In this document: piece after piece, positions 42,225-48,221 of the stretch | Position numbering within the stretch: position 1 is the stretch's first letter | How the letters are laid out: every line of letters begins with the position of its first letter | DNA from: Zygnema circumcarinatum SAG 698-1b | Lineage: Eukaryota > Plantae > Zygnematophyceae | DNA: 64,000 nt | NCBI GenBank assembly: GCA_037447605.1 | Contig: CM074805.1 | Span: 3,939,361 to 4,003,360 of the forward strand | Direction of reading: 5' to 3' | Translations under genes and position numbers: made by a program | Notes under the pieces: model-generated | Told to the model about the DNA's origin: nothing | The model's database searches: none | Seen by the model: the letters and a program-made list of their open reading frames with translations, nothing else

Positions 42225-45200
42225 TCACAGCAGGAGTGTGTCGGAGTCGCCCTGTGGCCCAGAAACATCCCTCCGATTCTTCTTAGAGGATGGAGCGGGT
42301 TGAATATGGTCTGTGTCGAGCCTTGTCGTGCCATCAATTCTTGTAACTTGTATGACATTGTCAGCGAAGCGCTGGAAACTCGAGTTGTGACTGATGCATA
42401 TGACTTGGCTTTCAGAGCATATGAGTGTCTTGATAAGGTCTGCAACAAGCTGTTGGTTCTGCTCGTCCAGCGCTGCGTCCACTTCATCCATGAGATACAC
42501 GCAGCTGCACTCTAGTTTGGCCACTGTCAGCGTGAAAGCCAAGCTTACCAGCGTCCTCTGTCCGCCTGCAAACGCGAACATGGGAGGGCCAGAAGCATGT
42601 CATGTATGTTATGTGTTATGCATGTGTTTCGTGGTAGATGACAGTGAAAACAAAGGCAGATATAGTGAAATTTGAAAGTTGGAAAGGTGGACATGGAATT
42701 GATGATTCACTCCCAACCGCCCCCAACGCCAGTTACGCCAAGAAAATTATTAGGTAGAATTGAGGACGAGGTTTACCTGACAACTCGCTCAGACTGGTCT
42801 TCCACTCCTGGGGAGAGGGAGCTTCTCCCTTAGCGGTGTTCGCAAAAATGAACCTCACTCCATTGTCGACCTCTGGTCCAAGCTTTTGCAAATCGAAAGT
42901 CTTGTTGGGAAGTAGATGCTTGCAGCATCGGACAAAGGAGGCTCTTACTGCCTCAAATGTTGAGTCGTTGACCGCTTGCACCTGTCCATTTAACATTCTC
43001 ACCACTTATGAACCATTTAATGGCAACAAATTTCGTATTTTTCGTTTAAAAAAGAGGCAAAGTCATTTCTTCATTTCAAACAGACGGACCTTGTGGCGGT
43101 TTCTTTCAATCCCTTCATTCAAAGAGTCAATCGACTCCACGATGGAAGCAGCCCTTTCTTTGAACGTTTCCAGTTTGGCGATACGCTCATTGAGGGCTAC
43201 TTGTTCATCAAGTGACAGCTGTTGCAGCTCAGACCTGTAAGAAAAATGCAGTTCATTCTTTACACAGCTCGCAAGTTTACTTGAAGCAGACGAGTTGAAC
43301 TAGATTTTTAAACATTCGTGAGCCTTTTCTTCGCTACTTCCTCTGACAGAAATTCAAGATTCATTATCTATCTGTCAATGTTGAGAAAAAAGGACGATCG
43401 TGAGTACAGAAAGAATGCCAAACATTCCTAACCACGAGGGCGGCTGTTTACCTGAGAGCCTGCTGGTCTGCTTCAAGCTCACGGAATCTGAGTTTACAAG
43501 CCGTGTACTGTTTCTCGTTGAGAATTGGTAACGGATTATTGAATTCAGATGTAAGCGGACCCTGCGAGTTCGACAGAGGCTTAGAGCTGAGCATATTTCA
43601 GAGAAAACCGAAACACTAAACCTTTGCCGGAAATATTTCTAGTCGTGCATGCGATAGGGTTTAAACTGCGATAACCTCACACGCTAACAACGCTGTTTCC
43701 CAGGGATATGCGAAAAATGAAGTATTGGCGACTGACCTTGTTCCCCTCACATTGAGGCAACCCCTCCAGTTCCTTCACAATGGAATCGCGCTGTCCCTCG
43801 AGCTGAGTAAAAGTCTCCTTTTCCCTTTCCAGCTCGGCCGTTAGAGTCACAAGCTCACGGTGAATCGCATGGAACTTTTCAGCCATGGCTGCTGTCTGTT
43901 CATCGTGCTTCTTCATGGCTTCCTTCTCAAAAATAATCTCCTCGTCGACTTGTTGCAGTTCAGACTTCAACTTTTCCAAGTTCATTGTCTGGACATCGAC
44001 TTCCTTTTGCAAAGATTCAGAAGTCGCATTGCCGGCTGTAGCTTGGAGCCTTTGTTTACGCTCCTCACATCTTGCCTTTTCCCATAACAGTTTGTTTCGA
44101 GTTTCCTCTATGGCAGCCTCATCCCCCTTTGCACCTTCAATGGCTGCGGCGATGACTTCGACTCCGCTGCAGTTCACAGCGATCCGTTTTTCGTGCTCCT
44201 CCAGCCTCCCCTCCATCCTTGAGACTTCCTCCTTTAGGGCTTCCATGTGCAGGCGTGTCCCTTTCAATGCGGTTTCATGTCTGGCCAATTCAGAGTGCAA
44301 ACATTGAAGCTGCACAGACATAGGTAAACTTAAACGCCAGTGGGCCCTTATCCCTGAATAGCATTGCAGTCAGCCGAATGAGGAACTTCTTAGCTAATGA
44401 ATATTGTCCATTGACCCGTTTTTTTTGTAATGGACTCACTTGTTCCTGTCCTGCTGCAGCTTTGAGTTGAAGGTCCTTTTCCTTGCGGGCTTGCAAACTC
44501 CACATCTCGACTTCGCCTTGCGCTCTCTCTTTCTCCTGGACAGGAACCCGACCATTGGCGATTTCGTTGAAATCGCAATAGCTTCCATTGCCTTTTCAAA
44601 AGCCAAAAGCCATGGTTCAAGTAGTTTTCCCAACATCCCCACAGACACTCGGGCATGTATTCCATAAGCATTGATAAACGCTAAGTCGAATATGCTTACC
44701 TCAATAACCCGCTGAAGCTGAGTCCGGAAGTCCTCCAAGCTCCCTTCAGCCGCATCGTGCTCAAGCTTGAGGCTCATATCGTTGCTCGCATGTTCACCTC
44801 TCCACCCCCCAACAATCGACCCTCTGCGATTTATGGTACCATCTACAGTAACGCTCCACACATTGTGGTCCATAGCAAGCACTTTTGCCGTTTCATCATC
44901 TTTGGCAATCACATAACTCCCAAAGGCCTTTTTAATGGCCGCTTTGAAGGTGTCTTTGTATTCGATCAAATCCTCAGGAAGAGTAACGGCGCCCTCTGGC
45001 AATCGACTTTGGGCTTTCCTTTGGTACTCCTGTCTGTCGGTGATTTTCAAGCAGTCAAGCGGCCAAATGCGAGTGAACGCAGCATGCGAAGTTCGAGTAT
45101 CCCATAGCTCCAGTAGTCTCTTGGATGCAAGGCTGTCTCTTACCACACAGATGCTTTTTAGCGAGCCTGAATGCACACAAAAGGGTTTGCTTTCGATGAG

Positions 45201-48200
45201 ATGTGCCAGCTTGACCAGGTTAGGAAATGCTGAAGGTATTGCACCAAATGCACGTGAATTCACGCGTTCCAGTTCGCCTGGTGTCGAGAGAGACGAAACC
45301 ATGCAAGGGAACAAGCGGAAGAGAAATGCCAATGTGTGCTGCACCTGCAATGACGTTAAGAGCTTCCAAGTTTCTCCTCTTGTCGGCAGTCATGCACGCC
45401 TCTCTGAATTTAAAGAGAGTGTGAAGAGGCCACGCCGGAAGGCTCGCCTCTTCTCTGTCCACCTCGCCAAGTTGCGATTCTAGCATCTTAGCGCGTTTGT
45501 ACTCTTCGTTCATCACTTTCGTTAATCTCATGTACTCTGAAATGGCCTTGTCGACTTTGGAAGTCCAAATAGCTAACTGCTGTGCTGCAGACGTTTGGCA
45601 TGTGTGGTAGCCCTCCACTTCTTGCTCCATGCGCTTGATTTCTTGCTGACTTTTTTCCACCGCACGTTTGGCATCCTTCTCATCCAAAATGGCCTGCTCC
45701 AGCTGCTCTTTCCCAACCTTTACGCTGTTTTGGATCTCTTGTATGTAGTCAACGGTGAGGATTTCATCGTTGCCACGCATTCCCGATTGAGATGCTTCGG
45801 CTTCAAGTCTGCAAACCAGCAGTCTTTGGTCCTCTAATTTTACATTTGCTTGCATAATTCGCGCCTCCAGGTACACCAAGTTGTGACGGCATCCTTCCAG
45901 TTCCACAGCAGCTGACTTAAAATGTTCAGCTTTTTGTTTCAGAGCAGCTATTTGCTCTTCGGCCCGTGCAATATCTCGGACAATGCAAGAACGACGCTTT
46001 TCCATGGTTGAGACGTTGACACCGACTTTACCTTTGCAGTTCTTCTGAAGAGTACTCAGTGCATCTTGTTCAGCCCTAAGCTCTTCGATTCTTGCCTCCA
46101 TAGAGCATAAACTCCCTCTCTTTACTACCAAGGCATCCGCCACCTGTGATTCAAGTTGTTCCTGAAACGTTCTCATCTTCCAAACTTGGTCTGAAATCTC
46201 ATACTCTACCTGCAAGGGGTGAATTCTTTCGTGAGGATGCAGCATTCAGTCTGCAACCTGGATTAATGGCAAACTGGCTCCTCACCGCCAGCGTTTAAAA
46301 AAGGAAAAATGCTAAATAGAGGAAAAAAGCCTGATGCCCGTCTGCCTGGTTGGAGATAACAATCCTGATGAAACTGCCTCACCTAATCCTTATCCTTTAT
46401 CCTTAACCTTCGGAGAACCAAAAGATCTTTCAAATGCCTCCCAATGGTTTCCACTCTCTTACCTCATTGCTGCGAGCCATTGCTTTCAGTCTTGTGTTAT
46501 CATTGGCAATCGCTCTGTCGAGGAGGGCTATGTTACGATTTATTTCCTTCAAACTCTTTTCCGTTTTCTCAACTGTTTCAACTGCTTGTCGGACTTCTTC
46601 ATTCCACCGACCTGCGAGAGGAGATCGGCGTCGATGTCATCCTTCCTGATGTGGCAGAACTCCGTTACAGTGAAAGAACAGCATGTATGCATGTGGTGAA
46701 TTCCTTTTAGGCAATGAAGTTTGCTCTATAGTCTACGTTGTGCATGTCCTATTCAAGTACTTCCACAACATACAAGAGATAATATATACAGTCAAAGGCC
46801 TGGTCAGAGTTTGACGAACTCCAACGCGCTAGGATCTGATAGCCTGGATACTGTGTGTGCTTCTGAGTTCTTCTGGTATGCTTTTTATGTTGCCCACGAA
46901 TAGCTCATGCAAATTCACCATGTTCGATCGCCCGGTCTCACCGGCTCCAGATGCCACACCAATAATCGCAGCAATAAGCTTAGGGCTATTGTTATCCGCA
47001 AGCTCCGTTACTTTCGCTTGTTGAAGTATTGCTGATGAATCTTCTAGAAGGAGGCGAGTTTCTCGTAGAAATTCCTATCGCAAAATACAAGAAATTCAGG
47101 AAAATCACAGTTGGCTTCAAACCCAACAAGTGGACGCCTTATATTGCCTGCCTTCGAAAATCCTCATCCGTCCAGCAAACGTTGATGACATTGAATTTAC
47201 ATATTAGTATGCACGCTTACAGAAAATAGACCTGAATGCTTTCTGGATATGGTTTTCGGCTGTAACGCTGTGACGCTTATCAGTACGTGGAAATGAAATG
47301 CACACATGAGCCCTCTCACCAGGGGCGGGAAGGAGATAGTAAGGGGAGGTTCATAATTTACCTTGATTTCCTTTCCGGATTTCAGTTTTCCATCGATTCT
47401 TAACTGACGTGAATAGTCGGGCATTAGCCTTGCAGATAAAACATGCGTTTCAATTTGAGCTTTCTTCGTCGTCGATGGAGAGACCGAAGAGCGAACCACG
47501 AGCTCCACTTCACAGACTTCACCGCTACTGGACGATATGAGTTCAGACATTTGCTGTACCCGTAAAGCTCCGGGCCGCACACCAAGAACAAAGCAAATTG
47601 CGTCTGCAGAATGCTCCAAACCAGTCAGGAAAATATGCGATGCGCCTCCAACCAAACAAAGCCACATCAGAGAAAATGTTATTCCAGAAACGCTGCGATT
47701 TCCGTTGGGATATATCTCAGCTGAGAAATGAAAGTGTTGATGAAATAATTGTCTGATGAATAGATTTCCAAGAATTTAGATACAAGTCAGGCATTGTAAC
47801 CGAGAGGTATGAATGAACGAAAAAATGCACGAATCTGAAAGGAGCGTCAGTTAGAGCTGAAAATCAAGGCGTTACCGATGATATTTGATTTGCCGCTTCC
47901 ATTGGCGCCAGCAATCAGATTGAAGCCCTTAGTGAACGAAATCTTTTGCCGATTGCCTCCAAATGACTTGAAGCCCAAAATGCTGACACCAGTAAGCAGA
48001 GTTAGGAGTCACCGAGGACTTCCCCTGGTTGCTTGACTCCAAAAAAATTTGCAGACACATTACATGAAACAAATCGACCGATCCAACATGTAAAAGTGAT
48101 GCCGGTAATGCACGTAAAGACGGCAGCCTCAACAAGCTACTGAGAATGGAGGAACCATATTCAAGTGAATCACGATGCAAACATGAGCAAACCTGACAGA

Positions 48201-48221
48201 TTCAATGAAGGCGCCGTCCAT
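42225..48221 (-). CDS. Divergent structural-maintenance-of-chromosomes (SMC) ATPase, SMC2-related, roughly 1,200 aa in about 13 exons
   Basis: Spliced head MDGAFIESVSILGFKSFGG...[19 protein letters not shown] (Walker A), Q-loop ILQQAKV, two long coiled coils, hinge AIKKAFGSYVIAKD...VTVDGTINRRGSIVGG, signature WKTSLSELSGGQR, Walker B [11 protein letters not shown]. Confidence 0.9.

Follow-up and report, generated by a model that had tools for sequence, protein, structure and literature searches.

Eukaryotes have been described with six SMC proteins that form four complexes, and reconstructions of the last common ancestor of eukaryotes (LECA) were built on that set, according to two eukaryote-wide surveys (PMC8665677; 10.1101/2024.01.07.573240). 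Extra SMC paralogs that build specialized complexes are known as well, namely DPY-27 in C. elegans and SMC4-2 in Paramecium (PMC13147532, PMC10700549). The name SMC7 has been given to the Chlamydomonas protein Cre17.g720450, which consists of a coiled coil only, has no ATPase head or hinge, and is found at the pyrenoid (PMC10473203). Here we describe a gene for a divergent full-length SMC protein, referred to together with its orthologs as SMC-X, from Zygnema circumcarinatum SAG 698-1b (Zygnematophyceae). The gene was analyzed within a stretch of 64,000 nucleotides (assembly GCA_037447605.1, contig CM074805.1, positions 3,939,361 to 4,003,360; hereafter, the window) and occupies positions 42225-48221 of the latter. 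We consider it likely that SMC-X is functional and represents a separate SMC subfamily of eukaryotes in the nu-SMC group, with SMC2 as its most likely sister and a split that predates the divergence of plant, animal, fungal, and alveolate SMC2.

The SMC-X gene is intact, transcribed, and spliced in samples of three studies. Its model was built from RNA contigs placed on the window, which were obtained from four public runs of this organism (X1, X2, X3, and X5; three studies). The coding sequence (CDS) lies on the minus strand, from the ATG at 48221-48219 to the stop at 42227-42225, and is composed of 13 exons forming a single uninterrupted open frame of 1153 codons (Table 1). Three runs contain ~60-69% of the sampled words, which is approximately the exonic share. 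RNA joints back 11 of the 12 introns, and each joint can be uniquely placed on canonical splice sites (GT..AG on the minus strand, seen as CT..AC on the plus strand). Intron 1 (47983-48192) has a canonical donor and acceptor and is without an RNA joint in the runs examined. Its model also rests on the fit of MDGAFIESVS/ILGFKSFG to the N-termini of orthologs: the predicted N-terminus MDGAFIESVSILGFKSFG aligns with AAYIKSISVRGFKSFG from Cryptomeria and ARIKSLSIRAFKSFG from Adiantum. Organellar targeting by a transit peptide was considered and ruled out, as the head begins at residue 1, like in the orthologs, with no N-terminal extension.

A preliminary description of this locus, made from the sequence alone, had given the exact CDS bounds and had recognized an intact full-length SMC with all ATPase motifs, not a pseudogene; the open frame and the conserved motifs bear this out. 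Its figure was roughly 1,200 aa, the actual length being 1153 aa. All strings that it quoted from the protein are present, including STFEAV and WKTSLSELSGGQR, the latter split by intron 12, and one string is spliced across intron 2. Transcripts, whose absence it had named as grounds for giving up the claim, are found as spliced RNA contigs from the three studies.

The window protein has the full SMC build and the features of the superfamily: a bipartite ABC-type head, with Walker A in one part and the signature, Walker B, and D-loop in the other, two long arms of ~300 residues, and a hinge. Walker A (GANGSGKSN, aa 35-43) lies within the Pfam SMC_N head (5.4e-11, exon 2), the signature LSGGQR at aa 1039-1044 is split by intron 12, and Walker B and the D-loop occupy aa 1064-1074, with Pfam SMC_N scoring 6e-20 on exon 13. 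The Q-loop Gln and the H-loop SHN (CISHNSSF) are intact. According to the alignment, the relatives keep the same motifs (Walker A, Q-loop Gln, LSGGQR, Walker B DE, D-loop, and H-loop His), and the hinge motif GGWRG is retained in the window protein. Approximately 315 and 290 residues lie between the head and hinge domains. Exon 7 yields 21.8 bits against Pfam SMC_hinge, under the cut-off of 22.5, and a phmmer comparison of this hinge exon with PDB produced hinges of Smc, SMC2, and SMC3, the top match being Geobacillus Smc.

Structure models were obtained for the Cryptomeria ortholog, not for the window protein itself. The hinge of this ortholog (45% identical to exon 7) gave an AlphaFold2 model with a predicted local distance difference test (pLDDT) score of 87. 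Foldseek matched it with ~50 SMC hinge chains, the best of them being the SMC2 hinge 4u4p_A (3e-11); human and yeast SMC2 hinges were followed by SMC3 and then by Geobacillus Smc. The full-length ortholog model (pLDDT 78) has the head-coil-hinge-coil-head order with helices 174-472 and 641-951, so that its arms contain ~300 and ~310 residues of helix.

These observations bear on the explanation that SMC-X has kept the shape of an SMC but lost its action on DNA, e.g., as a structural coiled coil like the pyrenoid SMC7 of Chlamydomonas. The hinge just under the Pfam cut-off and the fact that the name SMC7 already belongs to a green-algal coiled-coil protein (PMC10473203) would fit it, but we give it hardly any credence: Chlamydomonas SMC7 has neither the ATPase nor the hinge domain, whereas in SMC-X all ATPase motifs and the hinge fold of SMC proteins have persisted in lineages far apart from each other, a pattern indicative of selection on the ATPase function. 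As a candidate relative of SMC-X, SMC7 was rejected; the two are unrelated and share only the type of name and the green-algal context.

Maximum-likelihood (ML) trees were constructed from head and hinge columns only, using the LG+C20 posterior mean site frequency (PMSF) model, with support expressed as ultrafast bootstrap/SH-like approximate likelihood ratio test (SH-aLRT). Tree 1 contained SMC-X, SMC2 (from plants, Mesostigma, animals, fungi, and Eimeria), SMC3 (a Cyanophora protein with 863 bits to human SMC3 and one other), SMC1, SMC4, and archaeal and bacterial Smc; tree 2 is the same tree with more Asgard and bacterial Smc. SMC-X is monophyletic (100/100 in both trees), and so is SMC2 without SMC-X (100/99 in both). 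The arrangement (SMC3,(SMC2,SMC-X)) is supported by 97/97 in tree 1 and 100/99 in tree 2, and the pair of SMC-X and SMC2 by 88/69 and 86/68, respectively. SMC-X falls in the nu-SMC (SMC2/SMC3) group with support of 97-100; a deeper position is not rejected by approximately unbiased (AU) tests. Within SMC-X, the order of branching is Anaeramoeba, Cyanophora, a marine clade, and then streptophytes (Mesostigma, the window, and conifer plus fern) beside chlorophytes, which broadly matches the species relationships.

Sequence signatures and profile scores agree with this position. The SGGQ signature is present in 11 of the 12 SMC-X members that have the region, Anaeramoeba having SGGE. SGGQ is common to SMC-X, SMC2, and SMC3, and W-x7-LSGGQR to SMC-X and SMC2 alone; these are shared derived characters. 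SGGE is found in every prokaryotic Smc and kappa-SMC sampled. In PDB, the SMC-X profile scores highest with SMC2 (364 bits), followed by SMC3 (294), SMC1 (230), and SMC4 (209). Membership in SMC5, SMC6, or Rad50 was ruled out by the low scores of 67, 75, and ~84 bits, respectively, against 364 for SMC2.

Comparison with the two nu-SMCs shows what separates SMC-X from each. With SMC2 (CAP-E, the nu-SMC of condensin I and II) it has in common the build, the length class, and the signature, and the SMC2 hinge is the closest one to the model. However, head and hinge of SMC-X are only ~26% identical to SMC2, and the SMC2 hallmark strings that the preliminary description had reported missing are indeed absent from the window protein and present in real plant and Mesostigma SMC2. 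The H-loop has His in SMC-X and SLK in SMC2, the green-lineage SMC-X proteins are without the Gly that follows the Q-loop Gln, and the hinge has motifs of its own, RIWPLD and GGWRG, with Pfam SMC_hinge not called in SMC-X members. SMC3, the cohesin nu-SMC, is placed in the same nu clade, shares SGGQ, has the second profile score, and is not rejected as a sister by the AU test (p=0.12), but it differs in LSGGQK, in TFR where the H-loop lies, and in the lack of a Trp preceding the signature.

The affinity to SMC2 could also be explained by duplication of SMC2 in the green or Archaeplastida lineage, followed by fast evolution of one copy and its replacement of SMC2 in a specialized condensin, similar to DPY-27 for SMC-4 in C. 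elegans, in which case the outside position of SMC-X would be a long-branch artifact. The top profile score and ML sister position of SMC2, the common W..LSGGQR, the long SMC-X stem, and the concentration of nearly all secure members in Viridiplantae are compatible with such an origin. Nevertheless, it is unlikely: the AU test rejects SMC-X as sister to Archaeplastida SMC2 (Mesostigma and Solanaceae; log-likelihood difference 45.9, p=0.0001), the SMC2 proteins of plants, animals, fungi, and Eimeria form a clade that excludes SMC-X, the identity to SMC2 hardly exceeds the 23-24% to prokaryotic Smc, and the proteins of Cyanophora and Anaeramoeba have the R-I-W-x-L-D hinge motif. DPY-27 and SMC4-2 resemble SMC-X as extra SMC paralogs beside canonical condensin subunits, but they are recent single-lineage duplicates of SMC4, whereas SMC-X is of nu type, far more divergent, and spread over chlorophytes, streptophytes, and probably a glaucophyte.

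As an SMC2 ortholog, the window protein was ruled out by the monophyly of SMC2, the same AU test, and the missing SMC2 head motifs. It was also considered whether the gene might be Zygnema's only SMC2, an unusually divergent but ordinary condensin subunit. This is very improbable, as Mesostigma has SMC-X (P0060) in addition to a canonical SMC2 (P0313) that falls inside the SMC2 clade, the window protein is orthologous to uncharacterized conifer and fern proteins and not to plant SMC2, and SMC2 is reported as near-universal in eukaryotes (10.1101/2024.01.07.573240). The earlier assertion that the protein fits none of SMC1-6 as an ortholog is borne out; grouping with ordinary SMC2, named in advance as evidence to the contrary, is not what the ML trees give. 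The two alternatives offered at that time fared differently: an ancient extra SMC lineage, retained next to canonical SMC2 as in Mesostigma, fits better, and a fast-evolving SMC2 paralog is disfavored by the AU test.

The preliminary description had also noted a likeness to archaeal Smc. It is real at the level of the C-terminal head, where the last exon scores 49.8 bits with Pyrococcus SMC in PDB versus 38 with SMC3, 37.7 with SMC4, and 34 with SMC2, but the trees, which place SMC-X with SMC2 and SMC3, speak against archaeal affinity. Archaeal-looking head residues, including the H-loop His and VADLIK, are changed in canonical SMC1-4 and kept by many, though not all, prokaryotic Smc. The archaeal look is best read as retention of ancestral residues. 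The H-loop His was dropped as a marker of origin before SMC1-4, since prokaryotic Smc likewise have either His or Leu there.

The same resemblance raises the question of horizontal acquisition of an Smc from archaea, bacteria, or viruses, which would act as a homodimer like Smc in Smc-ScpAB. The top single-exon PDB matches of the C-terminal head and the hinge (Pyrococcus and Geobacillus Smc, respectively), the prokaryote-like H-loop His, and the AU tests that do not reject SMC-X outside SMC1-4 (p=0.11 and 0.26) could be seen as its traces. We regard this origin as quite improbable. The ML position inside SMC2 plus SMC3 persists when extra Asgard and bacterial Smc are added, SMC-X has SGGQ of the nu-SMC kind in contrast to SGGE in every sampled prokaryotic Smc, the His at the H-loop varies with Leu among prokaryotes, the gene is intron-rich and eukaryotic with 12 spliceosomal introns, and the SMC-X tree broadly follows the species. 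Scanning 185,579 prokaryotic genomes, one per species, revealed no close relative, only ordinary Smc with 21-46% best-segment identity from mixed phyla and no donor clade, and a viral scan gave short head matches only.

To identify members of the subfamily, 1.84 billion cluster representatives were exhaustively searched using phmmer (HMMER), the query being the hinge exon. Just 99 proteins matched, two of them below 1e-30. The named members are (i) the streptophytes Taxus chinensis, Adiantum, and Mesostigma viride, (ii) the chlorophytes Chromochloris, Dunaliella, Chlorella sp. A99, Chlamydomonas eustigma, and Myrmecia bisecta, and (iii) the glaucophyte Cyanophora paradoxa and the metamonad Anaeramoeba ignava; all are annotated as 'hypothetical' or generically only. 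The Taxus protein as a query added Cryptomeria japonica, Adiantum capillus-veneris, and Bryopsis, and beyond them scores fall from 256 to at most 100 bits. The window protein scores 590-665 bits with the conifer and fern members, 130-300 with the algal members, and ~100-130 with SMC2. A profile search with a 19-member SMC-X alignment, from which the plant and Mesostigma SMC2 reference sequences were taken, returned thousands of SMC2 entries and no further SMC-X member, and the Cyanophora hinge region as a query matched only itself. Fragment matches (P0002, P0005, and ten more) are pieces of metagenome or read assemblies without taxonomic information. SMC-X occurs across Viridiplantae and probably also in Cyanophora and Anaeramoeba, whose members carry the hinge motif R-I-W-x-L-D. 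A partial SMC2 of Cyanophora is remarked upon in the literature (PMC8665677).

No angiosperm SMC-X was found among the matches of the exhaustive hinge search or of the Taxus query, both made on protein predictions; in the latter search, an angiosperm ortholog at least 50% identical would be expected at the top rank. This may be read as a loss of SMC-X in angiosperms, on the basis of protein searches, and is in line with the absence from angiosperms expected earlier. The accompanying restriction to non-seed streptophytes, in contrast, has to be abandoned, as the conifers Cryptomeria and Taxus, chlorophytes, Cyanophora, and Anaeramoeba have SMC-X; this distribution also argues against the proposed link with flagellated-sperm lineages.

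Several deposited SMC-X models (P0039, P0101, P0216, and P0055) look faulty: in the Cyanophora one, Walker A is interrupted by 19 additional aa, Adiantum capillus-veneris is without the H-loop, Chromochloris is without the C-terminal head, and Bryopsis is without part of the hinge and the D-loop.

Intron-less SMC-X members of 1166-1227 aa were observed on six marine metagenome contigs of 10-18 kb (L001-L006). Their neighbors are COMM, DCN1-like, U-box, DER1, and RCC1 genes; because these genes are eukaryotic, the contigs are eukaryotic as well. The nearest Atlas cluster of the marine members is chlorophyte, and the contigs represent compact genomes of picoeukaryotes, probably prasinophyte-like green algae. 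The neighborhoods on these contigs gave no lead to a kleisin: the ~300-aa neighbors in two species are non-homologous, one of them being a U-box protein.

A number of points weigh against placing SMC-X next to SMC2 as an ancient subfamily. The reference sets are thin, with two sequences each for SMC1, SMC3, and SMC4, and SMC5/6 and Rad50 were scored via PDB only. The AU tests reject neither SMC-X with SMC3 nor SMC-X outside all SMC1-4. The SMC-X stem is long, ~1.05 changes per site, and long-branch attraction to SMC2 is therefore possible. Coexistence of canonical SMC2 and SMC-X is established from Mesostigma alone. The Cyanophora and Anaeramoeba proteins are the most divergent and weaker members, absences of SMC-X refer to protein predictions, and a word-indexed search skipped at least one known member, that of Adiantum nelumboides. 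Finally, homology is the sole basis of the mechanism outlined below.

The exons of the gene are listed in Table 1.

Table 1. Exons of the SMC-X gene in the window; RNA joints are given as the two joined positions, with the runs in brackets.
Exon	Position	Strand	Content	Evidence
1	48193..48221	-	ATG and first 9.7 codons (MDGAFIESV-)	CAG/gt donor 48193/48192; cag/ acceptor before 47982; N-terminus fits orthologs
2	47876..47982	-	N-terminal head; Walker A 47883-47909	Joint 47603/47876 (X5); Pfam SMC_N 5e-11
3	47362..47603	-	N-terminal head, beta-sheet part	Joints 47603/47876, 47074/47362; Pfam SMC_N 2.7e-5
4	46942..47074	-	Q-loop 46997-47032; family motif VTELAD.NSP	Joints (X2, X3, X5); alignment
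5	46463..46611	-	Start of N-terminal coiled-coil arm	Joints 46611/46942, 46209/46463
6	45345..46209	-	N-terminal coiled-coil arm and first hinge residues	Joints; ortholog model with long helices over equivalent residues
7	44700..45166	-	Hinge domain; family motifs RIWPLD and GGWRG	Sub-cut-off Pfam SMC_hinge; PDB hinges; ortholog model
8	44440..44535	-	Start of C-terminal coiled-coil arm, 32 codons	Joints 44309/44440 (X2, X5), 44535/44700 (X2, X3, X5)
9	43737..44309	-	C-terminal coiled-coil arm	RNA joints
10	43452..43561	-	C-terminal arm, break/linker region	Joints 43561/43737, 43234/43452
11	43090..43234	-	End of C-terminal arm	RNA joints
12	42777..42981	-	C-terminal head to first part of signature (EWKTSLSELS-)	Joints 42981/43090, 42565/42777; alignment
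13	42225..42565	-	Remainder of signature (GGQR); Walker B/D-loop 42453-42503; H-loop QVICISHN 42375-42410; stop 42225-42227	Pfam SMC_N 6e-20; Pyrococcus SMC 4.9e-12

Three further RNA joints within the gene (44321/44458, present in two runs, 43858/44116, and 42307/45870; span 42307-45870) show GT..AG when read on the plus strand, in antisense to SMC-X. They look like spliced antisense transcript(s) over exons 6-13, because, read as sense mRNA, these joints would have CT..AC and shift the frame. In run X1, which belongs to another study, position 45409 (exon 6) has A in place of the T of the window, and a single T is inserted after 44418 (intron 8); the depth is low, and strain variation is the probable cause. 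Immediately 3' of the gene, at ~41000-41720, overlapping open reading frames on both strands contain repeated units (...SQPLD...AVGSV...) and a GPARPGPARPG run, which suggests a tandem or low-complexity repeat.

By homology to the established SMC mechanism, we infer how SMC-X might work. The protein would fold back on itself into a rod and dimerize via the hinge with a kappa-type SMC, either canonical SMC4 or a dedicated SMC4-like paralog, or with itself, and a kleisin would bridge the heads. For a nu-type SMC, pairing with a kappa-SMC and binding of the kleisin N-terminus at the neck would be expected. ATP-driven engagement of the heads could then let the complex hold or entrap DNA, or extrude DNA loops, in a condensin-like manner. 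A possible, though tentative, extension is that SMC-X is the nu-SMC of a third condensin-type complex, ancient and perhaps older than LECA, that has a kappa-SMC and HEAT (hawk) subunits of its own. Green algae, ferns, and conifers would have retained this complex, and angiosperms and most other eukaryotes would have lost it.

The subfamily is apparently undescribed within the literature searched: no description of SMC-X was found in term searches of the two eukaryote-wide surveys, which treat SMC1-6 only (PMC8665677; 10.1101/2024.01.07.573240), or in the other full-text literature searched. With SMC-X as a seventh lineage beside SMC2, full in length and with its catalytic motifs intact, the six-SMC scheme would gain a branch. 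Conservation of SMC-X extends from chlorophytes to conifers and may reach outside the green lineage, and its presence in transformable algae (relatives of Chlorella and Dunaliella) makes its function accessible to experiment.

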